From the NCBI GenBank assembly GCA_047495785.1, contig JBLDXI010000046.1, positions 930,001 through 994,000 on the forward strand: DNA of 64,000 nt, in the 5' to 3' direction. A program made the position numbers and the translations under genes. Below are positions 45,201 to 57,048 of the stretch, one piece after another (the first letter of the stretch is position 1; every line of letters begins with the position of its first letter). The DNA comes from Lepidodermella squamata (lineage: Eukaryota; Animalia; Gastrotricha). The notes below the pieces were generated by a model. The model was not told where the DNA came from, did not search any database, and worked only from the letters and a program-made list of their open reading frames with translations.

Positions 45201-46218
45201 TAAAAATAGCTTAAAAATAGCTAAGAATAGCTGAAATAAAGCGCGTGCGTTATTTGTTTCATCTCAGCAAATTCCGATTATCGCTATAAACGATTTCCTC
45301 CGATTTAACTCAAATGCGGGAAGGGGCGTTGTGTGACATTGATCTCGCCAGCTGACATCATTTATGGTGCGGGATCCCGATGAAATTCAAATCGGAGGCT
45401 TATAATTGAGTTTCAATTTATTTGCATGAACGTTCAAGTTTTATTTTTTAGCTAGTTTCGTCCTACGACTTCGTAAAATAAGTGATACGATGTGATTTTG
45501 AATGCGAGATTGGGAATCGCACGTCATCGCGCTTCACTACCAATCGTGAATTGGCAATTGAGTCGATGGACGAGTCTAATTAGAAGAGCATGCACGCGTT
45601 AACGAGACGTTATAGCCATTTATTATTTCTTAAACAATAACTGAACTCCTACAAGCAGTAAGTACTCGATGCATGATCACGGCAATGAACAATACCTAAA
45701 AATATAAATGAGACAAATCCAATCAAACCCCGTCAAAACATGCAGCCAAGACTAAAGCGCGTTCGACATCATCCTACATCCTACTTGTCTTTTAGATTCT
45801 GGATATTCTTCCGGGTTCGCTGACGCAGATAAAAAAATAGCGTCGAAAATGTTGCGAGACCCTTATTTTGGCTTGGGACTAAATACTAATAATGAATATT
45901 AGTCCCAAGTATGAATTTTTGAAACTCAAATTTTTCGGAAGGAATTTGTCACACAGAGCAATTCAGATGGTCAAGATTCGGTATCGCCCGGTTTTATGTA
46001 TACATAGCTGGGTTTTTAGACTAGACCTAAAAGAGAGGATGGGCTTCGTAAAGAGCATTTTCATGATGTGAAAAAATCGTAAAAACCGTTATTATGCTCA
46101 CTTTTTAAAATTTAAACTCGAATGAAAACGCTTATAAGCGAAAAAAAACAAAAAACGAGTAGCACATTGGCGATAGTCTATTGTTTATACTCCTGTGTGT
46201 ATTTTCATGAAAAAGTAA

Positions 46219-47276
46219 ATGAGTAACTTATTAATTAAAGTTTCTTATACTGCATCCAACCGCCGTTGTTATTCAATGCTGGCTACGATTTTTAGCTGTA
46301 TTAGAAATTTGACCTACTACAGCGGAATATCTCGTTTATTGAGAAGCCGGTATTCTGTATCGTTCCGGAGGCGGTCATGCTTGTTCACCCTGATCACCCT
46401 TATAATCACAACTCTTTACCTGTTGAGACACCTTGGTTGGCTCGATATAGAGGGAGAATGCGGCGCTATGAGCCAGTATTACGATTCAAATGCTGGGAAA
46501 CCTCTGTACAACGTTGGCTTACTGATTATGGCAACGGGGCGTTACGTCAACTTCACGCATGGCCTCATCGAATCAGCGAGGAAGTACCTACTAACAGATT
46601 CAAGGCGATATAAGGTGCATTATATTGTATTCACCGACCACGTGAAGGATGCGCCGAAAGATCCTGATGTTACAGTAGTTTTCCAGAAGAGACTAGGCTG
46701 GCCTTCGGACACCCTATGGCGGTGTGGCATCTACCTTAACAGCTCAAAGCTTTATGAAGAGGTTTGCGTAATTTCCGCGTAATCAAACAATCCACCTTGA
46801 TAGATTTTCTATAGAAAAAACTGGATTATATGCTGTCTCTTGACGCGGACATGCGGATTGTGAACTGTATCGGCGGTGAGATTCTCAACGAGTTGTCTGC
46901 CGCTAGACACCCTGGCTATTACTTCCTGAGGTTCAACCCGTTCTTCCCGTTCGAAAGGCGCGACGAATCTTGCGCCCACGTTAGTAAGCTGGACTGGCGA
47001 GGTTACCGTGGTTATTTCTGCGGCGGGGTGTTCGCAGGGTCTCGTGATCGGTTCCTTCATCTCTGCCAGACTACAACGAACTGCATTCATGAAGACATGG
47101 GCAAGAATGTTGTAGCATGGTGGCATGACGAGTCTCACTTGAATCGGTACCTCATTGAGAATGATCACACAGTGCTCAGTTCGTCCTATTGCTTTGCCGA
47201 GGGATGGCGGTTGCCTTACAAGCCGAAAATCGTTGCGCTTAACAAGGACCATAACGCTATGAGAGCTGCTCGGTGA
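46219..47276 (+). CDS. Glycosyltransferase family 6 (ABO/alpha-1,3-Gal(NAc) transferase-like), type II membrane (exons 46219-46761, 46815-47276)
   Basis: GLLIMATGRY, HYIVFTD, GWPSDTLWR, DAD, HPGYY, PFERR, YFCGGVFAG, WHDESHLNRY, KDH; N-terminal TM; phase-0 intron 46762-46814. Start could be 46276. Confidence 0.92.
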
Positions 47277-48004
47277 TATGGGAATACTTCAATTCGGTTA
47301 TTGTGCGACTAACCTAATCTATACCTGTTTTTCGATGTTGAGAGATTTCAGGTATTAACGGGTTACGAGTCCGAAAAGTACGCCCGATGCAGTCCTGAGA
47401 AAATGCTATAATCACCGATACTTTACGATTACACATATCTTGTGAGATGAGAGGTATGTAACTATGGTAGTAGGGTATCGATGACTATTGCGTTAAAAAA
47501 TCTCGTCGTGCTATATCTTTCAAACGATACCTATATGTAATCGTGTTTTTAATAAATCATTCTAATGAAGCAAAACGTTATACCCCGCTAGTTTGAAGGC
47601 TAGTTATAGGCAATGTTTGAAAGCTGTATTTCAGATTGGAGCCACCATGGAGAACAGAAAATTGTTATCTCTTGCGTTTCTCTTCTAATTCCCGAGGAGT
47701 ACTTGAGTTTCTATTATGCTTCCCTCCAGCGTAAGAAGCTCCTTGGAAAACTAACTAGTCGGCTGCATTGGGTTAAAAGCAATATATCCTCAGTTTATAA
47801 GTCAAAAGGATTCTGCGTGAAAAATCTGGCTAATTACTTCGACATGGCGAATCTCTTGCAGTAGCGTACAAACAGAGTTCAGAATTCTTAAGTTTATTAG
47901 AAGTTTATTAGCTCATTACGCTACTGATATACGTTGAAGTGGGAGTGAACATGTTTACTTCATAAAAACGTTTGCTAAGGTCCCTCATTTAGTGCAGTTT
48001 TATA

Positions 48005-49914
48005 TTATACAATATTGTCGGGCTTACGGACAGCAGTAATCAGTAAAGTTACAGTAGGATAGATGAGTAGAACAGAACACATGAAAGATTGTAGAACCAC
48101 AAGTTGGTTTCCAATCATTGCCGTAACAGCAATCGAAGCGATGAAAAGCGTGAAAGCGGCGGCATTAGCAAATTTCCTTCTCTTAATCGCTTTAGGCAGC
48201 TTCATCTCTCGAAGCTTAAAAGAAAAAAACGTTCCAATAATTAAAGGAATAGCATTCAATACTATTAGGATAGCTTGGACAATTGATCCGAGACCGTTAG
48301 AAGTTGCGAGTTGGCAGGTCAATGCTTTGTTTTCGATCCATGAATCAGATTCATCGTCATATTGAGACGAGAGCAAAACTTCATTCACTATGGGCCCATC
48401 ACCGATTAGCCAGCCGATTACTCCGACAATGTTGATAAATGTGAAGATCGCTACTCTGATGGCTCTGATGATGAGCTCACAACTTCAACTGTAATGAAAC
48501 CGGACAACAAAAAGTCTGCGTAAATTGTTGATTTGCGGGCTCTGTCAGCTGGAAAATCAGGTAAGCCTTTCAGCTCGTTAATTTTGAACGTAGCATTCAT
48601 GTCATCGGCGCAGTTCAGAACGCAAATCATTCGATATCGAACTTCAATTGATTGCTTTTCTTCCGACCAAGTTCCAAGCAACTGGGGCTCGTTATCCCAC
48701 TCCATCCGTTTAGAGTACCGAAGTTCGCCGAATCTCAAGTCCCTAACTTCAGCATGAAAACTTTGCTTAGCAATCTCGACAATTCGTTGAGGGTCTGTGG
48801 CATAGTCTTCAAAAGTCAAATTTTGCGACTTCAAAAGCTGATCAGTTACATTGAGGCGAACTACCGTGTGGAAGGCTGAATCATAGCAGAGATGTCGAAA
48901 CTGGTAATCTCCAGCAGGCCTAGATCCGTTCGTGTAAGCCTCTACTTCAACCTCAAATCGCTGCAGCGTCTTTCCAAGTGAATCCACACTCCCAGCCGGG
49001 GGCGGTAGCCAGATATCAGTCGGAGCTCCGACGTAGATCGTATATTTCATTTGCTCTAGCAAAACTTGCCTCGTGCAGTTCGACCACGGCATCGGTGGTA
49101 GAATGGGTGGGAAATATTGCGAGACCATCTGCAGGATAAATCGATATTTCGGCCCACAGATGCCATGTTTGTAAGCCATGCAAAGGAAACGTAAGGCAAC
49201 CCAACCTTCGTTCGACTCGACGTTGAAAATTCGAATGTCACGCTTTTTCAACTGCGCCATGAAATCATCGTTGAAATCTAGGTTAGCTTCGAAGGCCGTT
49301 ATTTCGAAGCCATGATAACTGGCGGCTTTCAAAAGAAAGCTGCCAGTTTCGATGTTGTACGAATTGGATGATAAATGCATGATGATAGCCATTTTCTTCA
49401 CGTGGCTAGCTTTTTGCTCAAGAAAAGCCAATCGACTCGTCATATAAGCCTGCGCTGGCCCACGAATTCTGTTTAGATTCGGAAATTTCGACCTTTTATC
49501 TATTAAACCAGGTGCATTGCAAGATAAACCAATGCAAACTAGGTTCAGGTGGTGAAGAACTGCCCCCGAAGCTCTACATCCGTGGCTTTGAAGTGGACCA
49601 CTTGTAATAGGTGAGAGAAGTGTTGAAGAATCAAAAGGCTGTCGGACGAAATCGAAAGTGCTTTTAACAGCTAGCATTCCAGCTATACCTTCATTGCTGA
49701 AATCATATGCTAACTAGTAGTCGGGTAAGATATCGCTTCGCCTGTTCACTTCGTCGAAGACCATCTGTTGTACAGAACGGCAAAACTGAAAGTTGAGGGG
49801 TTCAAACCCAGTGAAAGGATGCAGAGATAGAACAACGACAGTTTTAGTCTTGTTCAAAGCTTCGCAACTGATCACCAAAAAGACGAACAAGAAAATCATT
49901 CGAAACAAAGCCAT
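48005..49914 (-). pseudogene. Class C GPCR (GABA-B-receptor-like), intronless, disrupted
   Basis: Signal peptide; EVNRRSDILPDY, DIRIF, FLCMAYKHGICGPKYRFIL typical of the Venus-flytrap domain; in-frame TAG at 49714-49716; TM1 jumps out of frame to a TM4-like segment near 48470. Confidence 0.72.
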
Positions 49915-50923: not shown

Positions 50924-53507
50924 TCAAACGTAATCTTCGAAATCGGTCTGCGTAGCCGCTGAAGTCTTGTTTCGCATAGCGTCACGTCGGCGAATGGACG
51001 CCAATGTTGGTCCACCATATCGTCGGTCTGTCATTATTGCTTTATCGACCTGATTTTCCTCGCTTCGATGAATGTTGACCTGGGTAGGTCCGCCTAGATA
51101 ATCGACGTGAACCGCTAAATCGCTGCGATCTAAGCCTGAGCTGGTTAAACTCTTCACATCGGCTACTTCACCAGTTCCGACTAAGGGAACAAAAAACTAC
51201 TATTAGAAACTGGGAATAGAAGTGTCTTAAACAGCCTTACTTGTGAAATGAATGTCTCCGTAGAAACCAGGGGTCGATTCGCTCATAAGCCGGATGAGAG
51301 CAGCTTCCTGAGCTTCGACGGATATGTCCTCATACACAGCTTCCGATGACGCAACTTCGACCTGGAACATGCTAGAAAAGCCAGGTCGGGATTTCGCTAG
51401 GTCTTGCGAGCTGTCTAGTCCTTGCGGCATCTTGATTACCGAGATGCTCTGATGTAATCGCCGCAATTCACCGTGAGGGCCGATTGGAACCTCGGAGCAG
51501 TGCTGTTGAAACTCTGCAACAGCTTTTTCAACACTATCGACGAGCTTGAAATTGTCCAGCCCGATAACCTCCATCTCGTGGCGGACGTGTTCGGCTAAAT
51601 TGACGAAAATTATGTGCTTCTTGAGCTTGAACACGAGCTGCATCAACATTCGCCACGCCTGTATCCCAGTGAAGTCGACCCCGGTGACGAAACGACAGTC
51701 CAGAACGAAATGAAGGTCCGGGCTAGACAAAATACCAGTCATTCGATCGATGAATTTATCGACGGATGGGTACTTCATTCCGTGAGATAGCTGGATAATT
51801 GTCGCCCGGCCAACTTTCTCATCTCCAATCGGTAGTCCGGTTGAAAGGATGTCAATAGGCTCGTGGCTCACAGATAAGTGCATGGATACAATTGGTCTCA
51901 AAAATAGGACCATGTTGATAAGTATAGCAATAACTATTCCATAAGCAAGGTCGTAGAACAGGCAAAGCATGAACGTAAACAGGTATAGAAAGAAGTCTGG
52001 TTTGTACTCTCTCCAAATCTTCATAGCCTGCGGAATTCAAGTCAAATTTAGTAGATTATTCGATTCAAATCAAACTTACAGCATGGTAATCGAAAAGGTG
52101 ATGAGCTGCAGCGATTAAGATTGAGGCAAGGGCTGCTTTTGGTACAAAGTAGATAACTGGGGTGAAACAGCTAAGGGTGACAAGGACGATTACTATACTT
52201 ATCGCTGAACTCAGCAGCGATTTCACCCCGCATCGATCGTTCAATACAGTTTTCGCAGTCGCTGCAGCGCAAGGATAGCCCATTATGAAGCTTTGCAGGA
52301 AGTTTGATAAGCCGATAGATACTAATTCTTGGGTCGCGTCGATTCGGTAACCATTTTTACGGCCCATAGCTTTCAGAATAGCAAAAGTCTCCATTATTCC
52401 CATCAACGGGAGGATAATGATTCCTACCGATATTTTCTGCATGATTTCTTGTGTAGTCTCTAGAACAACTAATTCTTCGACCCATTCTCCAGCATGCGTG
52501 ACATTTTCATGCCATTCTCCAGCATGCGTGACGTTTTCGTGCCATTCTCCAGCGTGAGTTGTATTGACAGCCATTTCGAATGGCCTCCAAACCACGGTCC
52601 TGTTGTAGAGAACAAAATCGGGAGCTCTTGGGGTTGGAAAGCCGGGTTTTATGTACCCGACCATGCCAAGATGAGTTTCCGTCCAATGCGGGTCCTCGAT
52701 ATACATCGAATAAGCAATCGCAGTCGCTCCGATGAAAACGAAGCAATTTCTGGTCGAGATTACCAATCTCAAGACAGTCAAGCCAACTTGCTTAATTTTT
52801 TTGCCAATCGCACTTCGCGGTTCCGGGAGACGAGGCACAGCATAGGTTACAAAGAAATCATGTGCGTATTCAATCGTAAGAAGGATAACCAATGAAATGA
52901 CACCAAACTTGACGTCCATGACTTTGATTTGATCGCGATGGTCGTAGTAGTACTTCAGCTGTTTAACGAAAACACCAGGGCTGTCATTTGGGCCCTTCTT
53001 AAAGCCAAGGAAGCTTTTCAATTGAGAGGCGATAATGCTGAAGCACGCAGCTGATGTGAAGCCCGAGACAACAGGAATGCTGAAGAGATTGACGAGGAAG
53101 CCGAGTTTGAATACTCCGATTGCGATCATCAGCAGTCCGCTGATCAGCGATAGAATTGAGGCGTAAGTATTGTCTCCTTCACTACTCAACGGGTTCAAAA
53201 TGTTGAACTGCGCCAGTAGCATAGAACCGATGGCTGACGGGCCAATTACAGCATCTTTGCTCGAGCCGAGGAATATGTAGATAAAAGCTCCGAGAAAGCT
53301 ACTGTAAAGACCGAATTCGGGTCTCAAATAAGCCAGTTGGGCATATGCGAGCGAAATAGGAAGTAAAGTAAAGCCGACAGTGAAACCCGCTATTATGTCG
53401 TAGGGAATGTTCGAAAGTTGGTAGTTGGGCAGCCATTTGACAATAGGAAATGCATCTCTTAGCCAGGCTCGTGGGTCTGTCTTGATTTGTATTATAAATT
53501 TCCGCAT
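50924..53507 (-). CDS. SLC26: SLC26/SulP anion transporter with STAS domain, copy A (SLC26A11-like; exons 53507-52080, 52027-51241, 51180-50924)
   Basis: FPIVKWLPNY, DIIAGFTVG, PEFGLYSSF, GSSKD, PVVSGFTSAA, IDATQEL, VLDCRFVTGVDFTG; phases consistent. Confidence 0.93.
52481..52560 (-). repeat. Coding 30-bp tandem repeat (THAGEWHENV)
   Basis: ccattctccagc(a/g)tg recurs at 30-nt spacing three times. Confidence 0.9.
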
Positions 53508-53859: not shown

Positions 53860-56484
53860 TCAATCAGTTTGCGTGGCAATGGATTTCGCGTTGCTATCGG
53901 GATCGGCAAAAGTAGTGCTGTAGCCTGTATTTCTTCTTCGCCTAAGCGAAGCGTTTGACATTCGGTCGATCACAATGCCATCGACTCGAGAATCGACTCG
54001 ACTGAAGCCGCGATGGAGGTTGAATTCAGCCGCACCTCCCGGGAAGCCGGTGTGCACAGCAATCTCGTCATCCTCCATCTCAATATTCGCATCCCCGGGT
54101 TCCTCGCCAGTTCCGACTAAGAAATGTATTCACGTATTATAAAGGATTGCTAAAAAAATAGCTTACGTGTAAGAGGCACGTCTCCCCAGAAGTAGCCAGG
54201 AGTCGAGTCTTCAATAAGCTTGGCAAGAGCAGCTTCTTGCGCGGCCTTCGACGCCTCGTCGCCCTCCTTTTCATCAATCGTAAGCACTTTGTGGTTGTGG
54301 TGATCGACATTGATGTGATGTTTGGATTCAACGTGGCTCTGCATTCTCGAAATTGTTGGAGAGGATCTCACGACCGAAATACTATGGCGAAGCCGTTTCA
54401 ATCGATCACTGCTACTGTCCGTTAAGTAACTATTGCCGAACTCGACTACAGCACTCTCGATGCTGTTAAGAGGCTTGAAGTTGTCCAGACCAATCGTCTC
54501 CATCTGGTGTCGCACAGAGTCGGCCAAGTTCACGAATATGATGTGCTTCTTATGCCTGATGACCAGGGCCATCAGCAATCGCCAGGCTTGAATTCCGGTG
54601 AAATCAATCCCTGTTACGAACCTGCAATCCAGGACGTAATGGATATCCGGTGTTGATAGCAGTGCAGTCATGCGGTCGATGAATTTGTCAACAGATGGAT
54701 ATTTCATACCATGAGATAACTGGATGATAGTGACGCGACCATGCTTCTCATCGCCTACCACATGCCCATGGCTAACGATGTGAAGCGGTTCGTGGGAGAC
54801 CGAAAGGTGCATGCTCACAATTGGCCGCAGGAATGTAACCATGTTGATGAGAATGGCGATGACGATGCCGTAGGCTAGGTCATAAAACAGGCACAGCAGG
54901 AACGTAAGCATGTACAAAAAGAAATCGGGCTTGTATTCCTTCCAAATTTTGATTGCCTGTGAAAAAAACAGGATTTTTAAAAGTCGAGCCAAAATTCTAG
55001 AAATGAGAAAAATCCATCCTAAAAATGAAAAATTCTGAAATATTAATTACTACTTGAAAATTACAGTTTTTAATCTCGGATATTTCAATTTTAATTTATT
55101 TGCGTAAATTTGAAAAATTTCTTACCGCTCGATAGTCGAAGAGATGGTGAGCTGCAGCGATTAGAATAGCAGCTAGCGCAGATTTTGGCACGAAATAGAA
55201 AATCTGAGTGAGAGAACCGATGGAAACCAGAATGATCACAATGCTTAAAATGCTGCTCAACAAAGATTTAACACCACATCGCTCGTTGAGAACCGTTTTA
55301 GCGGTGGCCGCACCGCAGGGATAGCCCATGTAGAAGCTCTGTAGGAAATTTGTCAATCCAATAGAGATCAGCTCCTGAGTAGCGTCGATTCTATAGCCAT
55401 TTTTGCGACCCATCGCTTTGAGAATGGCGAAAGTCTCCATGATACACATTAGTGGGACAATGATGATACCGACCGCAATTTTGGTCATTATGACCTGAGT
55501 AGTTTCAAGCAGGATCTCTTGCTCGACCCATGATCCGTTGGTTCGATTGGTCGGGTCGGGCACGAATACTTGCGTTTTGTTCCATAATTCGAATCTTGGA
55601 GCCGTTGGAACTGGAAATCCGGGCCTTATGTAGCCAACCATGCTGATGTGCTTCTCAGCCCAGACTTTATCCTCCTTAAACATGGCATAAGCGTAACCTG
55701 TCGTTCCCAGGAAGACGAATACGTTCCTGCCAGAAATGAAGAGCTTCAAGACAACCAGAGCAACTTCGCGAGCTTTCTGTGCCTTTTCCGATACCGGCTT
55801 TTTAATTCTCGGTAAAATGTAATCGCAGAAAATTTGATATCCATACTCCATGACTAGAAGAACCGCAAGAGATATAATTCCGATGTAAACATCGTGGAGT
55901 CGAATTTCTTCTGGATGGTCGGCGTAATTTTTCAATTGCTTCACGAACACCCCAGGGCTATCATTTGGATTCTTCTTGATGCCGAGGATGCTTTTCAGCT
56001 GAGAGGCAATAATCGTGAAACACGCTGCAGATGTGAAGCCCGAAACAACGGGAATGCTGAATAGGTTGACGATAAAGCCAAGTTTGAAAAAGCCGATGAA
56101 GAGCATGAGGAGACCACTTATCAACGCGAGGATTGATGCATAAGTGTTATCGCCCTGGGGACTCAACGGGCTTAGGACGTTGAACCCGGCCAATATCGTT
56201 GATCCAATCGCCGACGGTCCGATGACAGCATCCTTACTCGATCCCATGAACAAGTACAGAAAAGTGCCGATGAAACTGCTGTAAAGGCCAAATTCTGGCC
56301 TCAAGTAAGCAAGCTGGGCATAGGCCAGGGATATAGGAAGCAGGGTCAGGCCGACCGTTAACCCAGAGATGATATCATAGGGTATGTTCGCCAGCTCATA
56401 TTTAGGCAGCCATATCGCGATAGGAAACACTGATTTTAACCATGCCACTGGGTCTCTTCTTATTTGCGCAATAAATTTGAACAT
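53860..56484 (-). CDS. SLC26: SLC26/SulP anion transporter, copy B (exons 56484-55126, 54956-54167, 54116-53860)
   Basis: Same motifs and intron positions as copy A. Confidence 0.93.
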
Positions 56485-57048
56485 TTTATTTAACAAGCTA
56501 AATACGAAACTGGGGAGAGCACGCTGTGTTGACGTTATGGCTTTATATTTTTTTGCCGAGGTGTTCAGCTATAAACGCGCAGACAATGGCACGTTGGAGA
56601 GTGCGAGCGGCGTAATTATCACCAAAAGAACACGCTTTTTTGTTTTCTTTTTGACTGCTGCTTGCACTTTGATTCCAACCTGCGTCACAGGTAAAACTGG
56701 CGCAAAGCCCAGCAATCGGCAGTGGAATTTCATCATGAGGACGGCCGCGTCACGAAATTATGAGTGTAGGTTACATGTACACATGAGCCGCATTTACAAA
56801 GTTATTTATACATCAAACTTGAGTGCCAGACTTAAATAGGTCGAATGACCTGTTAACCTAGAATCTCAAGACAAAAAGCTTGAATCCTCTTCAACTCTTC
56901 GATTTCAAGGGTTTTAGGTTATTAGGTTTCAAGTCGAATACCTCTATTAGCTCGAAAGGTTTTATTTCAGATAAAACAGCAATGGAATGTAGGAGATGCA
57001 ATTAAGCAACATGCGAAAGGAATTGTCATAGAATTTTCTGGAATTTTC

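Follow-up and report, generated by a model that had tools for sequence, protein, structure and literature searches.

The window analysed here, a stretch of 64,000 nucleotides from the gastrotrich Lepidodermella squamata, contains a locus confirmed as an intact, transcribed and spliced gene on an animal contig. The gene quite probably encodes a functional type II membrane (Golgi-type) glycosyltransferase of CAZy family GT6 and, as part of the same judgement, is one member of a GT6 family that expanded inside this invertebrate lineage. The ABO, Forssman and alpha-Gal enzymes all belong to GT6. This family has been reported absent from invertebrates (PMC3961637), our literature search found no description of an invertebrate GT6, and horizontal transfer between bacteria and eukaryotes has been proposed for the gap in its distribution (Brew et al. 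2010, as cited in PMC5377540).

The focal gene is laid out as follows (window positions).

46219-47276, forward strand: focal GT6 gene, two exons, from the window sequence and the list of open reading frames
46219-46761, forward strand: exon 1, 181 codons, an open reading frame for the cytoplasmic tail, membrane anchor, short stem and N-subdomain of the GT6 catalytic domain
46762-46814, forward strand: intron of 53 nt, GT..AG, phase 0, 9 residues upstream of DAD, from a spliced cDNA contig
46815-47276, forward strand: exon 2, 153 codons plus stop, an open reading frame from the DXD motif through the C terminus of the GT6 domain

The TGA stop codon occupies 47274-47276, the coding part of exon 2 being 46815-47273, and the joined exons encode 334 amino acids. 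Splicing was seen in sequencing run X2, which is cDNA because SMART cDNA adapters and poly-T are present: a 283-nt contig joins 46759 to 46813, omitting exactly the 53 intron bases with their GT..AG ends. The X2 cDNA contigs span 46397-47560 at ≥99% identity. The first cDNA base, 46397, lies 3′ of the first ATG and also of the point where the anchor begins, and M1, M20 and M84 are candidate starts of the protein; a start at M84 would yield a soluble product. An upstream open reading frame of four codons (ATG AAA AAG TAA, 46207-46218) abuts the first ATG. Adapter-bearing loose ends near 47473-47562 were considered as the 3′ end of the transcript and dropped as uninterpretable.

Exon 2 matches the Pfam profile PF03414 (Glyco_transf_6) at 92.4 bits over profile positions 164-312 of 313, and exon 1 matches at 24 bits (residues 98-147, profile 76-122), the curated cut-off being 25 bits. 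In a comparison with the PDB, the top solved structure for exon 2 was that of Bacteroides ovatus BoGT6a (4ayj, 85 bits, E 4.6e-23), and from this similarity to solved GT6 structures the protein is predicted to adopt a GT-A fold; human ABO transferases ranked after BoGT6a at 74 bits. Exon 1 aligned to BoGT6a at 34 bits, with BoGT6a residues 2-81 matching residues 98-176, and the alignment of residues 98-325 with BoGT6a 2-232 is nearly gapless. The following elements were located in the protein.

46378-46434, forward strand: hydrophobic signal-anchor CLFTLITLIITTLYLLRHL, residues 54-72, Kyte-Doolittle 1.77
46842-46850, forward strand: DAD, Asp191-Ala-Asp193, the metal-binding DXD motif, aligned to NAN 95-97 of BoGT6a
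47019-47027, forward strand: Cys250-Gly251-Gly252, the ABO 266-268 donor-specificity positions, aligned to Ala-Gly-Gly of BoGT6a
47124-47135, forward strand: His-Asp-Glu-Ser 285-288 with the catalytic Glu287, aligned to WHDES of BoGT6a and invariant in alignment A2
47244-47264, forward strand: C-terminal Lys325 and Arg331, UDP diphosphate-binding residues by homology, Lys325 aligned to BoGT6a Lys231

A basic stretch ending in RRRS lies directly N-terminal of the anchor. Nearly all paralogue models carry an anchor, and the positions of the FRRxS, anchor and GECG stem motifs are kept in the closest paralogue, L018. Alignment A2 shows no variation at either aspartate of the DXD motif (D10 and D12). 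Glu287, within WWHDESH, aligns to BoGT6a Glu192, the equivalent of ABO Glu303, and His222 aligns to BoGT6a His122. Lys325 and Arg331 are spaced by 6 residues, as are Lys359 and Arg365 of alpha3GT (PMC3961637); in alignment A2 the lysine (K144) is invariant and the arginine (R150) nearly so, and the C-terminal Lys is common to all GT6 enzymes while the Arg is kept in most metal-dependent ones (PMC3961637). The profile, the PDB comparison and the cDNA contig thus bear out the sequence-only reading in its account of intact GT6 motifs, one short intron, a membrane anchor and DAD, as well as in placing Cys and Gly at ABO positions 266 and 268 within YFCGGVFAG. The DXD motif, by contrast, does not set this protein apart from its bacterial relatives: across 228 aligned GT6 sequences (28 paralogues from this genome and 200 database relatives), DxD occurs in 206 and NxN in only 10.

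By homology, the type II topology would place the GT-A domain in the Golgi lumen, where Asp191 and Asp193 would hold the Mn2+ that binds the UDP diphosphate of the UDP-sugar, and Lys325 and Arg331 at the C terminus would close over the donor diphosphate. Together with Glu287, these residues would be expected to support retaining transfer onto a terminal beta-Gal(NAc) through an alpha-1,3 link. UDP-GalNAc would be the likelier donor given the small Cys-Gly-Gly tripeptide, and we lean somewhat towards that sugar. The tripeptide code was established in the human A transferase and in bacteria, outside this invertebrate family. In vertebrates, LGG or AGG denotes A, MGA denotes B, GGA Forssman synthase and HAA the alpha-Gal/iGb3 synthases (PMC6351642); among bacterial genes, AGG and CGG are A-type (GalNAc) and TGA is AB-type (PMC5377540). 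We consider it rather unlikely that the enzyme is instead a galactosyltransferase (B- or alpha-Gal-type) or one of dual specificity. Tripeptide rules do vary among GT6 enzymes, in which several non-native tripeptides are active and acceptor context matters (PMC6351642), and the paralogues in this genome carry TGA, SGA, AGG and others, most being of the xGA type to which the AB-type TGA belongs. However, CGG is listed with AGG among the A-type bacterial genes, Gly at position 268 leaves space for the N-acetyl group, and BoGT6a, with AGG, uses UDP-GalNAc (PMC3961637). Assignment to the GT6 class with a GalNAc-type donor appears reasonable as a reading of the sequence, and the xGG tripeptide agrees with that of the blood group A transferase type (EC 2.4.1.40).

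An exon-wise search of the genome, of unvalidated sensitivity, found no match to GT11 (PF01531) at E <= 0.001, the best candidate reaching 18.6 bits (E 0.04). An H-antigen acceptor is therefore without support, and the acceptor need not be the H antigen. A GT37-type enzyme supplying an H-like acceptor was considered and dropped, PF03254 (plant xyloglucan fucosyltransferase) being without a match. GT10 fucosyltransferases (PF00852) gave 89 matches, many in tandem arrays such as C19:2107632-2176798 and C45:823710-846514, and the genome encodes a very extensive set of tools for terminal glycans.

The focal gene lies on a contig of 1.8 Mb and is flanked by animal genes. Those downstream are ordinary animal genes.

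48005-49677, reverse strand: receptor, whose ANF_receptor ligand-binding region precedes a hydrophobic exon
51227-53507 and 54150-56496, reverse strand: two tandem SLC26 genes (Sulfate_transp and STAS) with short introns

Run X1, which is probably the source sample, contains a second copy of the gene that is absent from the assembly and present at about a third of the depth. Over 46815-47093 it differs from the focal gene at 22 sites, 21 of them synonymous and one non-synonymous (in exon 2, pS 0.36 over 62 synonymous sites against one change over 217 non-synonymous sites). With 21 of 22 differences silent, the focal gene is evidently under strong purifying selection. Taken over 46749-47429, overall divergence of the second copy from the focal gene is about 7%, and its 3′ flank contains indels; a diverged haplotype, a homeologue and a sibling lineage within the sample are all candidate explanations.

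A PF03414 profile search of the whole genome (121 Mb, 151 contigs) returned 42 matches on about 15 contigs, corresponding to at least 35 genes, and 37 domain models were built from 32 loci, 28 of them nearly complete. Among all these copies the focal gene scores highest against a profile of the environmental relatives and so is the most canonical. Its closest paralogue, L018 (G000:C33:1268418), is 56-58% identical. The best splice models of 20 two-exon paralogues place a GT..AG intron of 47-431 nt at one common position, in phase 0 in 19 of the 20 and 8-10 residues before the DXD in 16 of the 17 in which a scan found a true motif. This intron occurs in all three paralogue groups of our trees, and the fish GT6 gene has its entire catalytic domain in one exon; the intron is therefore a feature of this lineage that is older than the expansion. 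Five paralogues (L001, L007, L013, L014 and L023) lack the family intron, and four of the five form one clade; they could reflect intron loss or be retrocopies. It seems that L013/L014 and L007 stop short, and they may possess another 3′ exon.

In one subgroup DAE replaces DXD and HEQG or HEQA replaces HDES, in intact reading frames that are often in tandem pairs.

G000:C29:3496553-3500020: DAE subgroup locus L010
C46:279554-283012: DAE subgroup locus L012
C46:677000-680700: DAE subgroup locus L015
C46:365100-368700: DAE subgroup locus L024
C29:3684000-3687600: DAE subgroup locus L025

The catalytic Glu in these paralogues is changed to Gln, as in the BoGT6a mutant E192Q, which has low activity (PMC3961637), and judged by these substitutions they are probably inactive or repurposed. 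Some pairs of loci on different contigs have identical or near-identical scores and equal spacing (G000:C36:1265586-1281181 and C42:891633-907224; C29:3496553-3500020 and C46:279554-283012), which suggests large duplicated blocks or homeologous regions.

Outside this genome, relatives were sought among protein, bacterial-genome and metagenome sequences, and no database protein exceeded 50% identity to exon 2. A homologous-protein search with exon 2 gave 14 matches, none above 47% identity, and a metagenome scan found nothing nearer to the focal protein than 47%. Queries with an intronless paralogue and with alignment A1 recovered GT6 sequences from fish, four in number, and from a further eukaryote, with no named invertebrate among the matches. 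In BLASTP comparisons, the focal protein scored highest against paralogues in its own genome (L018 314, L002 231 and L011 206 bits), followed by P0007 (194 bits), P0011 (186 bits) and P0029 (180 bits), the second of which is in a bacterial operon while the other two are on metagenome contigs of ambiguous origin. P0037, from a related animal, scored 158 bits and fish GT6 sequences 71-77 bits. Identity is 40-45% to the DXD-type bacterial and environmental GT6 sequences (Chlamydiota, Dependentiae and others) and 27-31% to those of fish, in line with the prokaryote-like catalytic domain that had been noted from the sequence. A screen for similarity would on these scores flag the gene as foreign, whereas the trees do not nest it within the bacteria.

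The trees were built from 228 sequences (FastTree) and from 84 (IQ-TREE, LG+C20), to which 77 named bacterial sequences were then added; all are unrooted, and the vertebrate sample consists of four fish sequences from a single subfamily, without mammalian ABO and GGTA1. The focal gene pairs with L018 at 100/95 in the trees of 228 and 84 sequences, inside a clade of six genes from this genome (98/87). In the 84-sequence tree, a branch with 92/99 support separates own-genome groups A and B, the four fish sequences, P0037 and P0117 from the 60 other rows, namely all environmental and bacterial sequences, the clade of a metagenome eukaryote (ERZ21830300), the long-branched own-genome group C and L027. 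The same split received 91-93 after addition of the 77 bacteria. An approximately unbiased (AU) test did not reject a single clade of the own-genome, metagenome-animal and fish sequences (p-AU 0.34), nor a single clade of all 23 own-genome paralogues in the set (p-AU 0.15). Nevertheless, the best tree divides the paralogues into three or four groups, and L020-22, L026 and L027 fall among bacterial sequences on long branches. These points count against a single resident family, the monophyly of which therefore rests on the common intron and the non-significant AU test.

The sequence-only reading had put the gene forward as possibly a second independent horizontal acquisition in this window. That the focal gene is a separate and fairly recent arrival from a bacterium or phage, which later gained its intron and anchor, seems highly improbable. 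Bacterial and environmental sequences do outscore those of fish (194 and 186 against 71-77 bits), and the top database matches belong to glycan operons of bacteria, in which they either neighbour GT2, GT4 and GT11 genes or are fused to GT2. The gene's own paralogues, of which there are at least 35, are nearer still, however, it is nested in no bacterial clade and is separated from bacteria by the 92/99 split, and the identity of exon 2 to database sequences nowhere exceeds 50%. The intron position common to 19 of 20 two-exon paralogues already contradicts a recent acquisition. The focal gene itself is a canonical member of the resident family, a more ordinary result than a new acquisition.

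The family is also older than this species. Genes for a nuclear receptor, TBP and Kri1 as well as a CCDC17-like gene accompany P0037 and P0117 on their metagenome contigs, and these flanking genes have counterparts in this genome at 43-86% identity (64-86% for the animal that carries P0117). In this genome the receptor's counterpart is found 8 kb away from the GT6 match C74:360761. P0117 is thus syntenic with C74:360761, and the GT6 family predates the split of the two animals.

For the origin of the family as a whole, we regard ancient transfer and old eukaryotic descent as roughly evenly matched. A single bacterial founder, for example Chlamydiota- or Dependentiae-like, may have entered an invertebrate ancestor independently of vertebrate GT6 and then acquired the anchor and intron and multiplied, a scenario we find plausible while stopping short of calling it probable. 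The similarity of the family is far higher to the bacterial DXD-type than to vertebrate GT6, the fish gene lacks an intron at the common position, and the reported absence of GT6 from invertebrates fits such a transfer. Among bacteria, sampled at one genome per species, we found 423 GT6 relatives, of which the best 80 (L046-L125) are 36-48% identical to exon 2. These 80 are mostly Chlamydiota (Simkaniaceae, Parachlamydiaceae and Rhabdochlamydiaceae) and Dependentiae/Babeliae, mostly obligate intracellular organisms of eukaryotes, together with some Pseudomonadota, Verrucomicrobiota, Thermodesulfobacteriota and Bacteroidota. The unrooted trees, however, put the family and the fish sequences across the split from bacteria (92/99; 91-93), and an all-animal clade is not rejected. 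Moreover, the trees have no root, so the direction of any transfer cannot be read from them, and the intracellular bacteria, which often take up host genes, are possible donors or recipients. DXD-type GT6 is common in such obligate intracellular bacteria, and different phyla are interleaved in this part of the tree, the pattern that gene exchange between bacteria with common hosts would produce.

The other reading is vertical descent, in which an old animal or eukaryotic GT6 expanded here and in vertebrates and was lost in most invertebrates, the bacterial DXD-type genes being host-derived; this we hold to be possible, though short of probable. It accords with the tree in which own-genome groups A and B, the related micro-animal and the fish stand together opposite all 105 bacterial and environmental rows, with the AU result for the animal clade, and with a bacterial cluster that mixes phyla sharing eukaryotic hosts. 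Part of what the sequence-only reading had set against an acquisition, a grouping with other metazoans, is indeed found, in that fish and a related micro-animal share its side of the split and an all-animal clade is not rejected (p-AU 0.34), but the sampled set does not show a broadly conserved metazoan clade. Cryptomonads are reported to carry three GT6 genes each (PMC6260743), and a large GT6 family occurs in a second, unrelated eukaryote from metagenome ERZ21830300, so that GT6 is wider among eukaryotes than the 2014 statement of its absence from invertebrates suggests. That organism (L038-L040; ctg717489l, ctg715783l and ctg716991l) is AT-rich (31% GC) and only distantly related to the present animal. 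It has no fewer than 15 GT6 genes; these lack introns and encode anchors, and some of them are arrayed in tandem next to a PTR2 transporter. Split kinesin exons were also seen on its contigs. Against vertical descent, the fish sequences sit on a very long branch (2.6 changes per site) of unsure placement, vertebrates are represented by four sequences of one subfamily only, identity to vertebrate GT6 is low, no other invertebrate phylum was represented among the GT6 sequences, and the clade of the ERZ21830300 eukaryote groups with bacteria. A bolder form of this history would make the family, with its diverse donor tripeptides (CGG, AGG, TGA, SGA and others), an ABO-like variable glycan code outside vertebrates, of old animal or eukaryotic age, and would have Chlamydiota, Dependentiae and further host-associated bacteria acquire their DXD-type genes from eukaryotic hosts; we think this improbable as a whole.

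An invertebrate with at least 35 GT6 genes, expressed and constrained and lying between vertebrate and bacterial sequences in trees, changes the picture of this family. It offers a second animal lineage in which to test the origin of GT6 and the direction of its transfer, and the tripeptides of the paralogues form a natural series of donor-site variants for studies of specificity.

Among known systems, BoGT6a (4ayj, 4ayl and 4cjb) is the best solved match of the focal enzyme. The two have in common WHDES, the C-terminal Lys, an xGG tripeptide (AGG versus CGG) and an EGW-LP-P loop on the acceptor side. BoGT6a, however, has NAN in place of the DXD and is metal-independent (PMC3961637), whereas the focal protein has DAD; BoGT6a is a soluble, operon-encoded protein of 246 residues, whereas the focal gene has an intron and encodes an N-terminal membrane anchor. 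The nearest non-animal relatives are the DXD-type GT6 proteins of Chlamydiota, Dependentiae and other bacteria, with which the DXD, HDES and C-terminal K..H..R are held in common and of which that of Parachlamydia acanthamoebae is metal-dependent (PMC3961637). These genes lack a eukaryote-type structure and lie across the 92/99 split. The vertebrate enzymes (ABO A/B, GBGT1, GGTA1 and A3GALT2) resemble the focal protein in type II architecture, DXD, catalytic Glu, the Lys/Arg spacing of alpha3GT and an A-type-like xGG, and fall on the same side of the tree. They differ in their low similarity to it (27-31% identity for fish and 74 bits for human ABO), in the acceptor-side C-terminal loop, which in the focal protein is of the bacterial type, and in the one-exon catalytic domain of the fish gene, which is split by an intron here; the vertebrate H antigen, in addition, needs a GT11 of the FUT1/2 type, the class for which our genome search returned none. 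Closest of all is the resident paralogue L018, which has the same CGG tripeptide, intron position and anchor layout as the focal gene.
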